Source: Octopus sinensis (taxonomy: Eukaryota). Taken from it: 48,640 nt of DNA. The stretch lies in the NCBI RefSeq assembly GCF_006345805.1, contig NW_021834415.1, positions 1 through 48,640 on the forward strand, written 5' to 3'. Below the pieces are notes generated by a model. The model saw only the letters and a program-made list of their open reading frames with translations. It was not told where the DNA came from and made no database searches. Below, in pieces: positions 1-46,067 of the stretch (its first letter is position 1; each line of letters starts with the position of its first letter). The position numbers were made by a program, and so were the translations under genes.

Positions 1-670
1 CCGGGGAATTTTCTTATATTATATCTGAAAATTGGTATTCCATTCGTTAAAGAATCGTATAATTCAGTGTAGTTTCCAAGAGCTTTCATATTTTTCTGAA
101 GGTGTTCCTTACAATCCCTATTAATTAGAAAGTAGATCATGTCTTTAAGGTTTTTTGTAATAATTTCTGGGTCGACGAGACTTCTAATCTGTTCATCCAT
201 TCGAAAAACGAAACTGATAAAATCGAAGCCCAAATATTTCAGTGTCCTTTCTTCCATGGCTTCCCTTCCACGAATGAAATTTTTCTCGGTGACGTATATC
301 TGGTATTTATTCAGATCCTGTTTTAGCGCCCATTGTTCTTTAGTGATGTTATACAAATTGCTAATGATTTCAATTTGGCTGTTGATACGATTGGAGAGAT
401 CGACATCGAAGAAAGCTTTAATTGGGCGAAAACTGTTTTCAAGGTTGATTAACAAATCCCTTGTTCTGTTGAAGACTTTGAGTTGCATGCGGTTGGTGAC
501 TTCTCTGGCTCGAATGAATTTTTCTTTGACGCCGGTACTCAAGATGCGATTCATGAGAGACTGAACGGCGTAAGTCGATGTCGTGGCATAAGAGACTGTT
601 GGCTCAAACAGTAAAGATTTGCACGGAACTGGACAAACGCACGTTTTGCGTACAAGATCCAATATTTCAG
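1..670 (-). CDS. DEG/ENaC channel long exon (end of thumb plus long insertion; runs off the window)
   Basis: Acceptor ttttgtAG|CT, then 222 codons without a stop to position 1: EILDLVRKTCVCPVPCKSLLFEPTVSYATTSTYAVQSL...IPIFRYNIRKFP. CxCPVPC and SYA are family motifs. Confidence 0.9.
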
Positions 671-3284: not shown

Positions 3285-3341
3285 CTTTATTCGGTAGATA
3301 ACAGTCCTGTTGTTGCTTTAGAGTACAGACAGGCGGGTAAT
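3285..3341 (-). CDS. DEG/ENaC channel 57-nt exon (thumb)
   Basis: Acceptor tttcatAAG|AT, donor G|GTgagt. Encodes (D)YPPVCTLKQQQDCYLPNK(A); phase 1/1 bridges the flanking exons and supplies two expected cysteines. Confidence 0.9.
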
Positions 3342-7823: not shown

Positions 7824-7977
7824 CATTTTTATGAGGCATGTAAAAAAGCCTGCAGTTGCATCTCTCATTTAGTCTCGTCGTGAAACAGTCAATTTCACAA
7901 TTTTCTGGGGTGTACATTGAGAAATATTTTAAGTCGCGTGTACTGCAAAGCCCTCTCGGTTTAGGAAGGTTGCTCAA
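7824..7977 (-). CDS. DEG/ENaC channel exon (Cys-rich thumb)
   Basis: Acceptor ttctccAG|, donor G|GTaggc. Encodes LSNLPKPRGLCSTRDLKYFSMYTPENCEIDCFTTRLNERCNCRLFYMPHKN with the canonical thumb cysteine spacing. Confidence 0.94.
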
Positions 7978-8669: not shown

Positions 8670-8851
8670 AGAAATTATTTTCAAACCCACAAACGCATGC
8701 GCTCCGGTTGGGGTTGCCAAACCAAGTTCACGGACTTTGGGGAACTCGTCTTCGTTGTGCATCAATATTTTGATACCCGCAGCATTGTTAGGTCCCGGCA
8801 TATATTCATATTGCTCAACATTCAAGATTAGACGTAAACCGTTTTCAGCTC
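8670..8851 (-). CDS. DEG/ENaC channel exon (beta-ball/palm)
   Basis: Acceptor aacttcAG|GA, donor TCT|GTaagt. Encodes GAENGLRLILNVEQYEYMPGPNNAAGIKILMHNEDEFPKVRELGLATPTGAHAFVGLKIIS, matching G..GL.L.LN.EQ.EY...AG.K..H..E.P. Confidence 0.94.
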
Positions 8852-9057: not shown

Positions 9058-9365
9058 ATCGACCCCGAAAGGATGAAAGGCAAAGTCGACCTCGGCGGAA
9101 TTTGAACTCAGAACGTAGCGGCAGACGAAATACCTATATCTTTACTACCCACAAGGGGCTAAACACAGAGGGGACAAACTAGGACAGACGAACGGATTAA
9201 GTTGATTACATCGACCCCAGTGCTTAACTGGTACTTAATTTATCGACCCTGAAAGGATGAAAGGCAAAGTCGACCTCGGCGGAATTTGAACTCAGAACGT
9301 AACGGCAGATGAAATACGGCTACGCATTTCGCCCGGCGTGCTAACGTTTCTGCCAGCTCGCCGCC
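9058..9365 (-). mobile_element. SINE family B, partial dimer
   Basis: Body repeated after the junction gtaaagatatag|gtatttcgtctgc (minus strand). Confidence 0.9.
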
Positions 9366-9647
9366 TACAGAAAATAAAATATTGTAAACAAACCAAATAA
9401 TCACAGTCAGCACAAACTTATGAAAAAGTACTTGATGGTAATGACAGTGATACTGATGGTGATGTTGTTGTTGCTGTTAGTGATGGTGGTGGTGGTGGTA
9501 CTGAGAGAGGTGTTGTTAATTTTGTTGTTGTTGTTGTTGTTGGTGGTGGTGGTGATAATGGCGGGGCTGTTGTCGCTGGTGGTGGTCGTATTGTTATAAT
9601 TATGAAATATTTATTCGAGATACTAATATCATTTACACACACACACG

Positions 9648-10559: not shown

Positions 10560-11760
10560 TTCGGAGGGAATATTCCAATTTTGTTTATTTTGGCATTGAA
10601 TCCATTATCATTCCTGCTACAAAAATCAAATGGCTACATGTTTGTGTATGCAACAGATGAAGACGCCAATGTAACACTCAGTTGCTTTGTGGATGGCCTG
10701 AAGGTCTAGGCTAAAGCAATTGTTTACAATACCAGAAAGAAATAAAAAAAAAAGCAGCTGGAATTAATTTCATTTTTACCTGACACAGGAATGGAACTTT
10801 GCCAAAAGAAATGTTCATATTTGATTGTCAGTCACTGAAACTCAAAATCTGTGCATCAACAGTCTCTGTATTTCTTTTGTTTGACACAAAGAACGATACA
10901 AATGTCTAGGCCAGTGCTTTTCAACCTTTTTACTGGAGCGGAACCCCAAGAAAACATTTCACTGGCTCGAGGAACCCCTGTGCAATAATTTCAATTGTCT
11001 TATGCACACATATCTGCACAGGAGAATTAAAAATTACTGTCGATTTTAGCAATTTTGTATCTTCTTGCGGAAACCCTGGACTGTACTGGCGGAACCCTAA
11101 GGTTCCGCGGAACCCTGGTTGAAAACCACTGGTCTAGGCATTGATGAAAACATATTTAAAAGTGATGTGGGTAAAGATAGACAGACCCGAGAATATTGCG
11201 CAAGATTTGGAAAAGTTTGATAGTCAGAACTCGCCTCTTACAAAAAGACAGCATCCCAAAAGACATACGCCATACCAGAACTGATTCTAGAACTTTGTAT
11301 ACTTGATTGGACTGAAGAAGAAATCTACTCCATAGACATTAAACCCGCAAGATCTTGAGGACATCTGGAAACCTCCACAGAAACAGTGATATTGTCAGTC
11401 TCTACCTAAGGAGAGATAAAGGAGGTAAAGGCTTTAGGTCAGTGCGAACAGCCTTCAGTATCGTACAGTCTCTCCCAGACAGCACCTGCGAAACAAAAGC
11501 AGGTGGAATTAAAACATAACCTTATTGCTAAAACCTGAAGAGGACATCATATGTGTCGGCAATGAGCTCTCCAAGAAGCCTTCTGTTCCTGGTGAATATT
11601 GGATATGTATTATATGTGATCACGTTCTTAACACCGACCGCTTCTTACGACTTGTGTCATATGTCACAAAATTTGTAAGACAATATCTGGACTTAAAAGG
11701 CATATGCTAGTTCTAAAAAAAAAACATTCCTACAGAATCAGACTCCAAAAGGCAAAGATA
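10560..11760 (+). mobile_element. Degenerate R4/Dong-like RLE LINE, reverse transcriptase region
   Basis: [13 protein letters not shown] and CFVDGLKV (decayed F.DDLK.Y) upstream; DWTEEEIYSIDIK and GNLHRNSDIVSLYLRRDKGGKGFRSV downstream, the latter homologous to HPKADVDRLYLPRSSGGRG at 45700. Frameshifted. Confidence 0.75.
10912..11131. mobile_element. hAT-superfamily MITE (220 bp) with 8-bp TSD
   Basis: TIRs CAGTGCTTTTCAACC / GGTTGAAAACCACTG; identical gtctaggc at 10904-10911 and 11132-11139. Confidence 0.93.
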
Positions 11761-14063: not shown

Positions 14064-14188
14064 CTGTTGAAAGTGCTTTCCGGTATTTGTTTCCGGCTTG
14101 TAGTTGGCTGTAAGTGTAGCATACGCCGTGGTCCGTATAAATTTGTTCAAAGTTCTTGAAAGTACATGGTTCTGATCCCCACATGCAT
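14064..14188 (-). CDS. DEG/ENaC channel exon (CxW...C...TDHGVCYT)
   Basis: Acceptor tttctcAG|A, donor G|GTaggt. Encodes CMWGSEPCTFKNFEQIYTDHGVCYTYSQLQAGNKYRKALST, matching the conserved CxW...F...T..GxCYTF segment. Not shown in this frame in the ORF track. Confidence 0.93.
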
Positions 14189-16127: not shown

Positions 16128-16292
16128 GATATGATCATATCTTCTTTCTGGTGTGCAACAGATTTGAACAGCTCCTCCATCGTTATGTTGTTATAACCAA
16201 ATCTCTCCAGTTCTGATGAGTCTACATATCTCACGTTATTGTAAATATATTCCAGTAACCGATACCGTTGAAGTTCTGCGGCTTTAGTCGCT
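16128..16292 (-). CDS. DEG/ENaC channel exon (finger region)
   Basis: Acceptor ttcaacAG|A completes CG|A (Arg); donor TC|GTgagt. Encodes ATKAAELQRYRLLEYIYNNVRYVDSSELERFGYNNITMEELFKSVAHQKEDMII; 165 nt, phases match both neighbours. Confidence 0.9.
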
Positions 16293-17051
16293 CTGTTGAA
16301 GATATATATATATTCCATCATTGAGGTTAGGATGGCAACAACACTAATTATTACCTACCGAAATTTAAGAAAGCCTTGCATATCTTTACTGTCCCACTTA
16401 CAGATCGTATATGTAACGTTAGTAGCGTTAGCCGGTCTCTTTCTTTCCTTGACAATTCTGGGTTGTATATAGGCATGCATCTATGTATGTATTTATGTAT
16501 CTATGTATATTTATTTGTATGGCTCTTTTTGAATATTGAATTTTTAGTGAAATTCTGCTTTAAGCACCCCTTATATATCCCTCATGACTCTTATTATTGC
16601 TTGGAATTTTCAAAAATTTTTTCCGAATTTGTACTCTACACACGAAAATTCATACGATTATGCAAACCACTCTATCAAATTTTTTTGGTGCGTGATTTAA
16701 GGGCTATCTAGCTATCATTTTTAGCACATCTCACGACCACCTCATACGCTCCCCGTTTGTTAGTCAGTCTGACATATTGATGTTTAGCAATAACTTTTTC
16801 TCCCCATAAATACATTTAATGTTCTATTGCTGAGATTTAAGCCAAAAATTTGGACTGTTCTTATTTAATATGATTCCAAAAATCGAAAAAAATGAAAAAT
16901 TTTTTTTTAATTTCGAAAAATTAGAAAAAAATGTTTCTCATAGTCGTCTGAATTCCCTATATAGGATACAAAGTCACGAAAATTCTGGAAAAATTCATTA
17001 AAAAATTCACAATTCACAAAAATTCTAAAAAAAAAAAAAAAAGTAATGAGA

Positions 17052-23220: not shown

Positions 23221-23577
23221 GGGCCAGTCGATTAGATCGACCCCAGTACGCAACTGGTACTTAACTTATCGACCCCGAAAGGACGAAAGGCAAAATCGAG
23301 CTCGGCGGGATTTCAACTCAAAACGTAGCAGCAGACGAAATACCTGTTTCTTTACTACCCACAAGGGGCTAAACACAGAGAGGACAAACAAGGACAGACA
23401 AACGGATTAAGTCGATTATATCGACCCCAGTGCGTAACTGGTACTTATTTAATCGACCCCGAAAGGATAAAAGGCAAAGTCGACCTCGGCGGAATTTGAA
23501 CTCAGAACGTAGCGGCAGACGAAATACCACTAAAGCATTTTGCCCGGCGTGCTAACGATTCTGCTAGCTCGCCGCCT
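23221..23577 (-). mobile_element. SINE family B, partial dimer
   Basis: Same internal junction as 9058-9365. Confidence 0.9.
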
Positions 23578-25379: not shown

Positions 25380-25607
25380 TCTTTACTACACACAAGGGGT
25401 TAAACACAGAGGAGACAAACAAGGACAGACACACGGATTAAGCCGATTATATCGATCCCAGTGCGTAACTGGTACTTAATTTATCGACCCCGAAAGGATG
25501 AAAGGCAAAGTCGACCTCGGCGGAATTTGAACTCAGACCGTAAGGGCAGACGAAATACGGCTACGCATTTCGCCCGGCGTGCTAACGTTTCTGCCAGCTC
25601 GTCGCCT
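25380..25607 (-). mobile_element. SINE family B
   Basis: Full head-to-tail match to other copies. Confidence 0.9.
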
Positions 25608-26097
25608 GAAACAATTGTAGTGGATTGACATATTATCCATCTGTTGTTATTTATACATACATACTTACATACATTCATACACACACACGTGTGTGTGTGA
25701 GAAGCATTAAAATGAAATCATAGTTATGTGAAAAGGAGATATTCATTGCGGAAAATAACAGAAAGTGTCCTTTTTAGAAAGCAAAAAAAAAAGGGCCTTA
25801 TTAGCAATCTTGATATTTGCTTTCTTCCGTTACTTTCCGGTGTTTATTTCTGTATTCCACTAATTTTGTATATAATCAGAAGTTATTTTCTCGGTAACTC
25901 TCCCTCCAGGATTCCTAATTTATTTTATTTTATTTCATTTTATTTTGATTTTTTTAATATCGTTTACCCTCCCTTGGTATAACAGTTTCTAGATATTTTA
26001 CATCTGCGCGTGCTAGAAAGATGAGCTTGTATCCAAGAAGATATATTTAAATCAGGCGCACAGTGTATACTTTACACAGTGTGCAAGGGTATTTGCC

Positions 26098-27176
26098 ATG
26101 TACGCAGAACCGCAAGTGTAGAAATTTGCAACTTTCTAGATGTTGTGAGATATTTTGTAGATAAAGTTCTGATGGATTTGGGGAGCTTCCGGTGGCAATG
26201 TTTTGGGAGCCTTTGGTGGCGATATTCTGGAAGCCTCTGGTGGCGATATTTTGAAAGCCTTTGGTGGCGATATTCTGGGAGCCTTTGGTGGCGATATCCT
26301 GGGAGCCTTTGGTGGCGATATTCTGGGAGCCTCTGGTGGCGATATTCTGGGAGCCTCTGGTGGAAATGTTTTGGGACCTTCTAGTCGCGATATTCTGGGA
26401 GCCTCTGGTGGCGATATTTTGGGAGCCTTTGGTGGCGATATTTTGAGAGCCTTTGGTGGCTTTATTTTGGGAGCCTCTGGTGGAAATGTTTTGGGACCTT
26501 CTAATCACGATATTCTGGGAGCCTCTGGTGGCGATATTTTGGAAGCCTTTGGTGGCGATATTTTGGGAGCCTCTAGCGGCGATATATTGGGACCCTCAGG
26601 TGGCAATATTTTGGGACCCTCTTGTGGTAATATTTTGGGTGCCTCTAGTGGCGATATTCTGGGAGCCTCTGGAGGCGATATATTGGGAGCCTCTAGTGGC
26701 GATAATTTGGGAGCCTCTGGTGGCAATGTTTCAACTGAATCAAAGAGAAAAGAAATATTCTAAACGTTCCGACACCATGAGGACATCATAACTGATGCAA
26801 AGGATAGAAAGTATTGTCGGTGATGATGACCCCGGAAAATCAATAAGAGCCATCAACGAAGAACTTCAGGTGTCGGATTGGACTATCAGAATTGGGGTGC
26901 ACGAAGACATTCGATACAAGTAGTGTGTACTGTGTATAGGCCAATTCGTGACTGCAAAACAGGAAAACTGATTCGTACCAAGTGGTTACTTAACAAGGTT
27001 AAAACCCTCGAACATGACCTGCTTTAGTTCTTCACCAATGAGAAAAATTTTGACCAGCACCGAAAGTTGAGCTGGAGAAATGACCGATGGTTATGTGCAT
27101 GTCCTCTGATATCAACAGGATGATGTGCACAAAGTGTCCAAAAACTGTAATGGTTTTAGGAGTGGTGAGTGACGAA
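26098..27176 (+). mobile_element. Decayed Tc1/mariner transposase (HTH region to first catalytic segment) interrupted by a minisatellite
   Basis: RTASVEICNFLDVVRYFVDKV..., KYSKRSDTMRTS, DDPGKSIRAINEELQVSDWTIR..VHEDIRYK, FFTNEKNFDQ..RNDRW, TVMVLGVVSDE, with stops and frameshifts. Confidence 0.85.
26191..26731 (+). repeat. 24-bp minisatellite, 22 full units plus a partial (consensus ggtggcgatattctgggagcctct)
   Basis: Unit starts at 26191 and 26719 differ by exactly 22x24; no indels; 120-bp higher-order repeat at 26359/26479. Confidence 0.95.
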
Positions 27177-27955
27177 GCATTTTGCCCGGCGCGGTAACGA
27201 TTCTGCCAGTTCACCGCCTAATAATACTTATTTCTTTACTATCCACAAGGGGCTAAACATAGAGAGGACAAACACAAGGACAGGCAAACGGATTATATCG
27301 ACCCCAGTGCGTAACTGGTACTTATTTAATCGACCTTGAAAGGATGAAAGGCAAAGTCGACTTCGGCGGAATTTGAACTCAGAACGCAGCGGCGGACGAA
27401 ATACCACAAAGCATTTCGCCCGGCGTGCTAACGATTCTGCCAGCTCGCCGCCTTAATCTAATAATTAAGCATGCTAATAATTCTGCTGGCTTGCCTTCCA
27501 AGATATTAGTTTCAAATTCTAGCAGGTCAGCAATTTCAGAATTTCAAATTCTAGCAGGTCAGCAATTATATCAACTAAGTGTTCAACTGGTACTTATCTT
27601 ATTGACCTTGAAAGGATAAAAAACAAAGTTGGCCTCAGCAGAATTTGAACACAGAATGCGAAAACTGATGAATTGGCACTAAGCATTTTGTCTAGCGTGC
27701 TGACAATTCAACCAGCTTGCCATCTCGTATTGTCTTAATATTGATTTCAAGCTTTCGCACAAGGTGAGCAATTTTGGGTAAGGGGTCTAGTCAATTACAT
27801 CGACCCCAGTGTTCAACTGGTACTTATTTTATCGACCCTGAAAGGATGAAAGGCAAAGTCGACCTCGGCGGAATTTGAACTCAGAACGCAGCGGCGGACG
27901 AAATACCACAAAGCATTTCGCCCGGCGTGCTAACGATTCTGCCAGTTCACCGCCT
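27175..27955 (-). mobile_element. Cluster of three family-B SINE copies (27175-27450, degenerate 27560-27725, 27760-27955)
   Basis: Repeated aaggcaaagtcgac...ggaatttgaactcagaacg motifs. Confidence 0.85.
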
Positions 27956-28024
27956 AATAATACTAAGAAAAAAGAATGTTTGTGTATGTAGGTGTGTATA
28001 TGTGTGTGTCTGTGTTTGTATAAA

Positions 28025-28055
<31 letters not shown>

Positions 28056-28080
28056 AGAGGAGGGAAGAGTAGAAACTTAC

Positions 28081-28248
28081 CGGAAAGCATTTTGATTGCA
28101 TATTGTTACAGAGGGGAAGATTAATGTTTTGTTGTAGTTGATGTCGACGTTCACGGTGACTGGCCAGCTGTAGTAGTAGATTATACGGTCAATGATTTGG
28201 TAAGACATTAAACCCAAGCAGAGTAGCACCAACAACAACCACAGAAGT
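28081..28248 (-). CDS. DEG/ENaC/ASIC-family channel, TM1 exon (first exon found; phase 2 to phase 2)
   Basis: Acceptor ttttcgttacAG|A, donor CG|GTaagt. Encodes LLWLLLVLLCLGLMSYQIIDRIIYYYSWPVTVNVDINYNKTLIFPSVTICNQNAF: hydrophobic TM1 followed by the family motif FPxVTICNxN. Confidence 0.93.
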
Positions 28249-44499: not shown

Positions 44500-46067
44500 C
44501 ATTGTCATTTACTTTTAATCTGCATGTTTGATGCAATCACCTGCCGGGGCACACCCAGCGCTCTAGGGCAAGTGAAGGTTAAGAGTTGTTGAAATATAGC
44601 TGAAAGCTTGGGGAGGGGAAGTAGAGATATATCTCCATGTAATGCAAACACAAACATTTACATTGATAGGGTTTTTCTAAGGATGTGGGCAGTACTTGTT
44701 AGCACAATCTTTTGGATTTCCTTGAGACATAGTTTTCCAGGGATATTGTCTAGGTGTTTCTGACATCCCTTTTTTTATCATACCTAGGGCACCTACAATA
44801 ACAGGAACAGTTTTTGTTTTAAAATTCCACATCTTTTGTATTTCGATTCCAGGTCCTAATATTTACTAAGTTTGTCAAATTCCTTTACAGATACATTTTT
44901 ATCAGTGGGGACGCTTACTTCTATTAGTCTGCAGATATTTTCTTCCCTATCTTTAACAATTATGTCTGGTCGATTAGCCTTGATCGTTCTGTCAGTGTTG
45001 ACTGGAAAATCCCAGAGGATGGTGACATCTTTACCTTCAACAACTGGCTGAGGATGGTGTTCATACCAGTTAGTAGGAGTGTCGGATTTGTAGTGTTTAC
45101 ATATCTTCCAATGTATATACTGTCCTACCCTATCGTGGCGATTTTGTATTCGTTTGGTGTCAGCACAGGACATCCCGAAACGAGATGGTCTATTGTTTCG
45201 TCAAATGTGTCACAGAATCTGCATTTAGGGTCAGTACCGTTTCGAGAACGTTAGCTGGTAATTTCTGGTAAACAAGCTTTGATCTTGTGCTGCCATTATG
45301 AAGCCTTCAGTCTCTGCTTTCAATCCAGAACTCTTCAGCCACTGATGGGTTGTTGCTTGGTCTACATCAGCATTTTGGCTTCGGAGAACATATTGTCCAT
45401 GCAGGGGCTTCTGGCTCCACCGCCTCTCAATTTGATTCTGCCCGTTCTTTTTTGCAGTTCTGCTTGATTCGCTTTGCTTGCTTGGTAGCAGTGGTTTCCG
45501 GCTCTTCATCTGATTCAAGGTTATGTCTAGTTCCCTTTCGACTTATAAGCTTCCTTGACAATAGAATGCAGCTTTTTGCTGCTTTCGTGTCGCACACAAG
45601 TCGCAGCATCCAGTCCTTTGTACTAGATAGGTACCTGTTCATTCCTACAGTAGAGGTCTTATAGTACAGCTCTAATTGCATCATTCCTCTCCCCCCGCTG
45701 CTTCTAGGTAGGTACAAGCGGTCTACATCTGCCTTAGGGTGGTGCATGCTCTTGGATGTCAGTACTTTCTTGTCTTCTGTCCAAGCGTTGGAGTTCCGTA
45801 AGGTTCCAGTTAATGATGTTAAAACTGTACTGGACTACTGGAAGTGCCAGGGTGTTATGGCCTCAATGCAATTTTTGGAGTTGAGTTCAGTCTTCAGTAC
45901 AAGCCTTATTCTCCTATAGTATTCCTTTCTTATTTTTTTTCCTTCATAGTAGCATGATGTATACCATCTTCTTCGTTGATTCCTAGGTATTTGTAACTTC
46001 TTGTGGTCAAGTTCCTGATGGAATGTCAATATCTAATTTAACAGAAGCTGTTTGCCTGAGCTGCCTC

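Follow-up and report, generated by a model that had tools for sequence, protein, structure and literature searches.

Acid-sensing ion channels such as ASIC1 and ASIC2 (PDB 6l6p and 2qts) have two membrane-spanning segments (TM1 and TM2), an extracellular layout of palm, beta-ball, finger, thumb, and knuckle, and 14 extracellular cysteines. The ASIC ectodomain was given as ~300 residues by Marti-Solans et al. (2023), who described five residues of rat ASIC1a (H73, D78, K211, E411, and E416) as "fairly conserved throughout all ASICs" and who found no ASIC in the molluscs that they sampled, an absence discussed as a loss (PMC9949801). Uncharacterised lophotrochozoan groups were placed on the ASIC/BASIC side of the DEG/ENaC superfamily by Elkhatib et al. 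(2023; PMC10507113). In the FMRFamide-gated channel FaNaC (PDB 8on7 and 7yvb), the peptide pocket is made up of the finger, beta6-beta7, and alpha6, and activation moves the finger toward alpha6 of the neighboring subunit (Kalienkova et al. 2024; PMC11026163). Shear sensing via the matrix by alpha-ENaC depends on N-glycosylated asparagines in its palm and knuckle (Knoepp et al. 2020; PMC6955349), and tethers have been postulated for both degenerins and ENaC, their protein identity being unclear (PMC6955349). We analyzed a stretch of 48,640 nucleotides from Octopus sinensis (NCBI RefSeq assembly GCF_006345805.1, contig NW_021834415.1, positions 1 to 48,640 of the forward strand; hereafter the window), the minus strand of which carries part of a DEG/ENaC gene. 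The best explanation of the results as a whole, to which we assign a probability of roughly 0.8, is that this gene encodes an ASIC-like channel with a conserved helical domain of ~452 residues in its knuckle.

Position of the insert within the channel

A preliminary description of the window had proposed that a DEG/ENaC gene remains open for about 195 codons after the motif CVCPVPC...SYA, in a single exon and with no beta11 or TM2 motif, and that this stretch forms a helical extracellular insertion of at least 190 residues at the knuckle, bearing N-x-T sequons. The minus-strand translation from position 671 opens with AEILDLVRKTCVCPVPCKSLLFEPTVSYATTS... (also given as AEILDLVRKTCVCPVPCKSLLFEPTVSYATTSTYAVQSLMNRIL...) and continues without a stop for 223 codons, down to base 3; the remaining two frames contain many stops. 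An acceptor AG is located at 672-671 and the exon begins at 670. SYA occupies residues 27-29 of the translation (593-585) and is followed by 194 codons, in agreement with the earlier count; the window shows neither a beta11 nor a TM2 motif, and the three sequons were confirmed at translation residues 68 (NRT), 108 (NIT), and 200 (NYT). Stops account for ~6.8% of random codons at the composition of the window, which gives p ~1e-6 for 195 open codons. Because of this value and because of the conservation across phyla, a chance open frame was excluded.

The 670 nt at 1..670 of the minus strand are the first part of a large exon that holds beta10, alpha6, and the insert and runs past the left edge of the window. 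At a related O. sinensis locus, beta10, alpha6, and the whole insert are encoded by one 1524-nt exon, as anticipated for a one-exon insert, and by comparison about 850 nt of the large exon would be missing beyond the window edge. Within the visible part, CVCPVPC...SYA (585..641), aligned to the ASIC CxCxxPC motif, holds beta10 and the last three of the 14 canonical extracellular cysteines. The segment STYAVQSLMNRIL (540..578) is the counterpart of knuckle helix alpha6; it corresponds to helix 305-317 in the model of the Argonauta orthologue, and its position relative to ASIC was taken from a HMMER alignment. The first 170 of ~452 insert codons (RAREVTNRM...IFRYNIRKFP) extend over 3..512 and encode a conserved segment predicted to be all-alpha.

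The large exon is the last of seven consecutive minus-strand exons in the window, all with canonical AG/GT sites and matching phases, which together give an unbroken model of 506 aa. Pfam ASC (PF00858) matched this spliced model, taken without a 57-nt thumb exon, at E=4.6e-65 and 220.9 bits (cut-off 23.6) over positions 23-410 of 455, and matched the last exon alone below threshold at 15.2 bits, with residues 8-68 corresponding to model positions 356-411 of 455. The model contains the FPxxTxCN motif that follows TM1 (here FPSVTICNQN) and 14 of the 14 ASIC-type extracellular cysteines, as counted against the pattern of chicken ASIC1, which we take to be the reference. When the AlphaFold2 model of the Argonauta orthologue was compared with chicken and human ASIC1 by Foldseek, the fold was matched at E ~1e-13 with a probability of 1.0, a TM score (target) of ~0.5, and 27-28% identity, and the core matches comprised ASIC1, ASIC2, ASIC5, and ENaC structures at E ~1e-13 to 1e-10. 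These comparisons identify the gene as an octopod DEG/ENaC from the ASIC/BASIC side of the superfamily, and the preliminary description was right in calling it a DEG/ENaC.

A search with the spliced window model recovered relatives that include the rest of the protein. The Argonauta hians protein (P0002, 850 aa) was 71% identical, and further relatives were a second O. sinensis protein (P0006, 603 aa, partial), gastropod and bivalve proteins of 726-800 aa, and a Capitella protein (P0021, 807 aa). A partial Octopus bimaculoides protein (P0001, 296 aa), for which an 895-bp contig forms one open frame, overlaps the last 67 window codons at 87% identity and then continues for 229 further residues without TM2. 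In all of the complete relatives the insert is followed by beta11-beta12, NILELAIFYRELSYEEIEHQ (also given as FYRELSYEEIEHQ), and then by TM2, DIGGSMGLFLGASVLT, with its GAS filter; Argonauta P0002 and O. sinensis P0006 run on through NILELAIFYRELSYEEI and DIGGSMGLFLGASVLT, and the beta11-beta12/TM2 region of the relatives aligned to ASIC2 residues 395-457. HMMER alignment of P0002 with human ASIC2 paired residues 2-300 with 57-377 and residues 774-836 with 395-457, leaving 473 P0002 residues opposite 17 ASIC2 residues (378-394), exactly between knuckle helices alpha6 and alpha7. The knuckle placement and the statement that only a few tens of residues stand here in ASIC and ENaC are thus both borne out. 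At the related O. sinensis locus, beta11-beta12 and TM2 are encoded by two separate exons, 3.0 and 4.8 kb downstream of the insert exon. Since the relatives have a normal alpha7, beta11, beta12, and GAS-filter TM2 after the insert, the encoded protein would be a channel subunit that is complete and has gained an extra module. The conservation of the insert makes an internal splice to a normal knuckle very unlikely, and a stop before TM2 is very unlikely given that the relatives run on into a canonical beta11-beta12-TM2.

The same region bears on whether such proteins conduct at all, as the channel scaffold could have taken on a second life in adhesion or reception, with display of the arm as its task. 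We counted toward this view that no literature on the function of any member was found among open-access papers. It is opposed by TM2 and pre-TM2, which are the best conserved parts after the palm (DIGGSMGLFLGAS), by the GAS filter and the small residues at the degenerin position, and by the full set of canonical extracellular cysteines in the window model; we regard a non-conducting family as highly improbable.

The core of P0002 was most similar to ASIC2 (180 bits), followed by ASIC1 (175), ASIC5 (154), ENaC (110), and FaNaC (98), and the phmmer match to ASIC reached E=5e-52. The likeness to ASIC1 and ASIC2 extends to the two-TM topology, the arrangement of the ectodomain and its cysteines, and, in the relatives, the GAS selectivity motif. 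The window family differs in the ~456 extra residues between alpha6 and alpha7 and in the acidic-pocket carboxylates of the thumb, which are not conserved. Of the five rat ASIC1a residues named above, two are kept: H73 is replaced by V or P (WPVTVNVD) and K211 by S (PRGLCS), D78 is retained, and in the relatives E411 is replaced by R and E416 is retained. On these sequence grounds we do not file the window gene as an ASIC, though its core is closest to ASIC2 and ASIC1.

Conservation, predicted fold, and distribution of the insert domain

With boundaries set from ...AREVT to an alpha7-like FxR(D/E)N, the insert of cephalopods, Littorina, Argopecten, and two Mytilus genes measured 452-453 aa, whereas that of Capitella had 483 aa. 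The large insertion of the preliminary description is therefore real, but the size of about 190 aa was too small, the full insert being ~452 aa. The 170 insert codons visible in the window aligned without gaps to the start of the insert, with 62% identity to Argonauta over this part, and represent the first 38% of the domain. They carry its most conserved motif, KNFIRGREAMEERT (243..284, minus strand), recognized in alignments of 9 and 50 sequences; its F, R, E, and R are invariant in the 9 sequences and 83-95% conserved in the 50. Further invariant residues among the nine sequences form the pattern G-x-P-I-F-x-Y-K, and F79, E88, R89, and Y318 of the insert are >90% conserved in the 50-sequence alignment. 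Of the 50 members, 39 share the NYT sequon (66..74, minus strand; window residue 200). Inserts carry a median of 8.5 sequons, and this alignment shows no cysteine column that is widely conserved. As the insert lies between TM1 and TM2 and bears a conserved sequon, it must, on this topology, be extracellular.

Some database models lack 110-130 residues of the insert, namely Batillaria P0004, Mya P0008, and Lineus isoforms of 1000 and 873 aa. These shorter inserts could be annotation errors, made by gene predictors splicing within the long exon, or real shorter isoforms.

Structure prediction with AlphaFold2 was carried out on the full-length Argonauta orthologue, using 22 family sequences, and on the insert alone, using 50. 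In the full-length model the insert was all helical with a predicted local distance difference test score (pLDDT) of 90-97; the longest helices spanned residues 336-419 (84 residues) and 554-644 (91 residues), and the junctions H305-317/H320-334/H336-419 and H750-771/H776-795 contained breaks of only 2-4 residues to the alpha6/alpha7 region. The insert-alone model reached a mean pLDDT of 94.2 and a predicted template modeling score (pTM) of 0.84, again with all helices (11-94, 98-111, 120-157, 191-224, 229-319, and 335-377, plus several shorter ones). The insert is therefore predicted to be an elongated all-alpha bundle, in keeping with the helical character first read from the letters. From these models we infer an up-down-up-down arrangement ~13 nm long, the length being derived from the helices, with both ends meeting at the base; conserved residues would lie near the far tip and at a mid-level junction.

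No known fold was recognized. Searches of the insert against the PDB gave nothing at E<=0.001, the matches (best E=0.016; TM scores 0.09-0.24, root mean square deviations 20-60 A) all being to generic long coiled coils, and searches against viral models also gave nothing at E<=0.001 (best E ~0.01), with TM scores of at most 0.32 across the PDB and viral searches. PDB sequences searched with the fragment and with the 50-sequence profile returned coiled-coil noise (best E=0.003), and Pfam searches of the fragment, P0001, and four full-length relatives matched ASC on the flanks and left the insert unmatched. The bundle shares with chemoreceptor sensor domains, the ALIX V domain, SMC/Rad50 coiled coils, and ciliary coiled-coil proteins the packing of long helices alongside one another, but there was no significant fold match to any of these, and the sequence searches showed no relation. 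The fold searches, having given no significant match, also leave an origin of the insert from a virus or a known fold unsupported. An internal duplication, suggested by two similar helix patterns, was also unsupported when the insert halves were compared by hhalign (probability 5.8%).

We scored an insert-only profile exhaustively against 1.84 billion representative proteins and obtained matches in 310 clusters at E<=1e-3, of which 241 passed E<=1e-10 and 138 passed E<=1e-30; a word-indexed homologue search with the insert alignment had returned merely 6 proteins. Full-length matches were 850-1004 aa long, with the insert extending from ~300-450 to 770-930. Twenty matches were looked up and 13 were named, as "uncharacterized" or by automatic labels ("acid-sensing ion channel 2-like," "degenerin-like protein del-10"). 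The named members come from bivalves (Pecten, Ruditapes, and Mytilus, with Argopecten as a named member of the Pecten cluster), gastropods (Haliotis and Babylonia), a cephalopod (Octopus bimaculoides P0072, LOC106880211, a third and more distant paralogue), an annelid (Capitella), nemerteans (Lineus and Tubulanus), and a brachiopod (Lingula), so that the long-insert relatives suspected in other spiralians do exist. Many matches were single open reading frames (ORFs) of 450-590 aa that span the whole profile, on genomic contigs of up to 1.25 Mb, and for this reason an intron-less insert appears to be common. The recovery of one homologous family in molluscs, annelids, nemerteans, and brachiopods marks the module, by sequence homology, as ancient; the domain was detected in lophotrochozoans only. 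Octopus has at least three insert-bearing paralogues (the P0001/window type, P0006 or LOC115224697, and P0072), and several occur in Pecten, Lineus, Capitella, and Mytilus, so that subunits could combine into heteromeric channels. The literature was searched by accession and by topic, and the insert was described in none of the open-access papers.

A crinoid protein, Antedon mediterranea P0022 (658 aa, ASIC-like), has ~190 extra residues between CDCPEEC..SFSA and beta11, at the same knuckle site. It was tried as a homologue but failed to match the insert profile at any E up to 10, and we treat it as independent; the alpha6-alpha7 connection may be an insertion-tolerant site.

These data were also weighed against a trivial origin of the open frame, which might stem from intron retention, a pseudogene tail, the capture of a mobile element, or a prediction artefact. 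The 3' end of the gene is outside the window, some database models are labeled LOW QUALITY or are without parts of the region, and the window introns are rich in repeats, all of which would fit such an origin. It is contradicted by the chance of ~1e-6 for the open codons, by the presence of the same 452-aa segment at the same site and with near-equal length in four phyla, and by the ratio of nonsynonymous to synonymous substitution rates (dN/dS), which is below 1: comparison of the window with the related O. sinensis gene gave 0.56 over the insert and 0.22 over the codons of beta10 and alpha6. The AlphaFold2 confidence of 94, the failure to match viral structures or Pfam families, and the intact TM2 that follows the insert in relatives point the same way, and a trivial origin is hardly credible.

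Exons of the window gene and surrounding repeats

The exons were defined from stop-free segments of the minus strand, anchor motifs, and tblastn of relatives. The earliest exon of the gene visible in the window, at 28081..28248, encodes TM1 (LLWLLLVLLCLGLMSYQII) and the post-TM1 motif, and relatives were 88-100% identical to it by tblastn. It is followed by a finger-domain exon at 16128..16292 (ATKAAELQRY...AHQKEDMIIS), an exon with beta-ball/finger cysteines at 14064..14188 (CMWGSEPC...GVCYTY), a palm/beta-ball exon at 8670..8851 (GLRLILNVEQYEYMPGP...), and an exon for the start of the thumb at 7824..7977 (NLPKPRGLC...CEIDC...CNCRLFYMPHKN), all on the minus strand and each supported by splice sites, frame continuity, and tblastn. 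The 57-nt thumb exon at 3285..3341 (minus strand; DYPPVCTLKQQQDCYLPNK) was detected by tblastn. A 5' exon with the HG motif, which is seen in relatives P0003, P0005, and P0008, was not found in the window by tblastn with the P0003 N-terminus. The gene thus extends past both ends of the window, because the HG-motif exon lies outside it and the large exon is open to its left edge. The gene combines very large introns (3-12 kb) with small upstream exons (57-182 nt), the latter contrasting with the 1.5-kb insert exon. Long (ATA)n and (TA)n microsatellites are located at 700-790, 940-1075, and 2520-2650, directly upstream of the large-exon acceptor.

The spliced product of a very close relative, P0012, is 95-100% identical to the window in the exons. 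It contains an extended exon 3, an extra block that matches 11427-11270, and an SQNIATRG repeat read as coding. In the window, the intron after the TM1 exon holds 23 copies of a 24-nt tandem repeat (26176-26731) that reads as SQNIATRG octapeptides on the minus strand, in a frame that holds a stop. Further window segments related to the repeat or to P0012 are 16293-16354 and 11270-11427.

One interspersed repeat occurs in at least five intronic copies on the minus strand (9243-9476, 23372-23551, 25484-25717, 27231-27452, and 27832-28188) and was recognized by the shared pseudo-peptide GGELAE[TS]LARRAKC...FRLPLRSEFKFRRGRLCLSSF[QR]GR; judged from its sequence it is probably a SINE-like (short interspersed nuclear element) repeat. 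A cluster of broken ORFs of 65-135 aa at 44859-46032 of the minus strand resembles, by eye, the 3' part of a retroelement; a Pfam search of these ORFs at 44.8-46.0 kb gave no match.

Possible roles of the helical arm

The linkers that join the insert to alpha6 and alpha7 are only 2-4 residues long, and because of this the bundle should be located at the external corner formed by the knuckle and the neighboring finger. In the arrangement that we propose, a helical bundle would stand atop each subunit of the trimer, rising from its top outer corner. The arm would bind something extracellular, whether matrix, mucus, another cell, or a macromolecular ligand, and force or a conformational change would then pass via alpha6/alpha7 to the upper-palm strands beta10 and beta11 and onward to the gate. 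Because alpha6 and alpha7 lead straight into these strands and the short linkers clamp the insert, the gating machinery should feel the rod move. By analogy with the FaNaC peptide site and the alpha-ENaC knuckle glycans, this external corner is important for gating across the superfamily.

Three described systems offer partial parallels. The glycan tether of alpha-ENaC resembles the arm in that a knuckle-to-matrix link is proposed to carry force to the gate and in that the insert likewise sits in the knuckle with sequons; it differs in being a glycan on an ordinary short knuckle, whereas here the knuckle contains a protein domain of 452 residues that is predicted to be folded. FaNaC is also a lophotrochozoan DEG/ENaC with a lineage-specific elaboration of the same external corner (finger plus knuckle alpha6), but it belongs to the ENaC-side clade and gave a much weaker match (98 and 25 bits, compared with 180 for ASIC2), and its elaboration is small and in the finger, whereas that of the window family is a separate domain in the knuckle. 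MEC-4 and MEC-10 of Caenorhabditis elegans share the possession of added extracellular domains and a long-standing model of gating by extracellular attachment. Their extra domains, the extracellular regulatory domain and cysteine-rich domains, are located elsewhere in the ectodomain and are not known to be helical rods. These degenerins belong to the other clade, and no homology to the insert was seen. In its action the arm may resemble the ENaC glycan tether or the FaNaC corner site, although in structure it matches neither. We tentatively propose, at a little short of even odds, that the insert serves as a tether or as an arm for binding a partner, through which external attachment or a macromolecular ligand is coupled to the gate.

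The conserved residues of the insert could instead serve an agonist or modulator in solution, be it a peptide, a protein, or a small molecule, the arm being a ligand-binding domain like the helical-bundle sensor domains of bacterial chemoreceptors or the FaNaC finger insertion that makes the FMRFamide pocket. R81, E88, and R89 and the aromatic residues F79, Y318, and F348 are conserved near the ends of the two longest helices, which would form the far tip; the second-best fold match, which was not significant (E=0.029, TM score 0.15-0.18), was to the ligand-sensing domain of the chemoreceptor McpZ, and the FaNaC peptide pocket includes alpha6. No pocket, known binding motif, or significant structural match was found, however, and a rod of 13 nm goes far beyond what a small ligand needs; we consider such a role somewhat unlikely.

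A purely structural arm would have no part in gating and would act in assembly, subunit choice, trafficking, clustering, or surface spacing, for example as a three-arm crown. The paralogue counts (at least three in Octopus and at least two in Pecten, Lineus, and Capitella) make the sorting of heteromers a plausible need, the weak PDB sequence matches were mostly to trimeric coiled coils, none of them significant, and work on ENaC points to a part of the knuckle in surface expression. On the other side, the confidently predicted monomer fold (pTM 0.84) means that the arm has no need to pair between subunits, and its coupling to the gate is suggested by the short, rigid linkers that tie it to alpha6/alpha7, at a corner known for gating. 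A structural role without gating is in our estimate quite unlikely.

Coming back to a tether or partner-binding arm, a bolder form of it is a built-in extracellular gating tether, in which these channels would be self-contained mechanosensors, or contact or macromolecule sensors, with force on the 13-nm rod opening an ASIC-like pore. In this form, we rate the idea as unlikely.

Several points weigh against the reading of the window gene as an ASIC-like channel with a conserved knuckle domain or against the role suggested for that domain. The constraint on the insert, at a dN/dS of 0.56, is only moderate, though real. The 3' part of the window gene, with the remaining insert, beta11-beta12, and TM2, is beyond the window edge, and we infer from the relatives only that it is intact. 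Parts of the insert are missing in Batillaria P0004 (757 aa) and Mya P0008 (745 aa), and P0012, the single close spliced relative, is an odd isoform that terminates early. With a pTM of only 0.53, the full-length model does not fix how the bundle is oriented against the core. The sequence gave no pointer to a specific ligand or matrix partner.

The family touches the long-standing question of how force or other extracellular signals reach DEG/ENaC channels, as it provides a channel with a large, conserved extracellular rod, predicted to be well folded, that is fixed to a corner known to matter for gating. What is new, and would surprise specialists, is a conserved domain of ~452 residues at the knuckle; the sequences themselves were already in public databases. 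The insert defines a new domain family that comprises at least 310 sequence clusters and for which neither a Pfam entry nor a structural relative was found. It occurs in tractable animals (Capitella, Lingula, oysters, scallops, and Octopus), which makes a tether or receptor-arm mechanism directly testable. An ASIC-side lineage may have escaped surveys that assume an ectodomain of ~300 residues, namely in molluscs, from which the loss of ASICs was reported (PMC9949801). If the gating-tether reading is true, the arm would be the first protein tether built into a DEG/ENaC channel, and this would suggest that ASIC-side channels were rebuilt, rather than simply lost, by molluscs.

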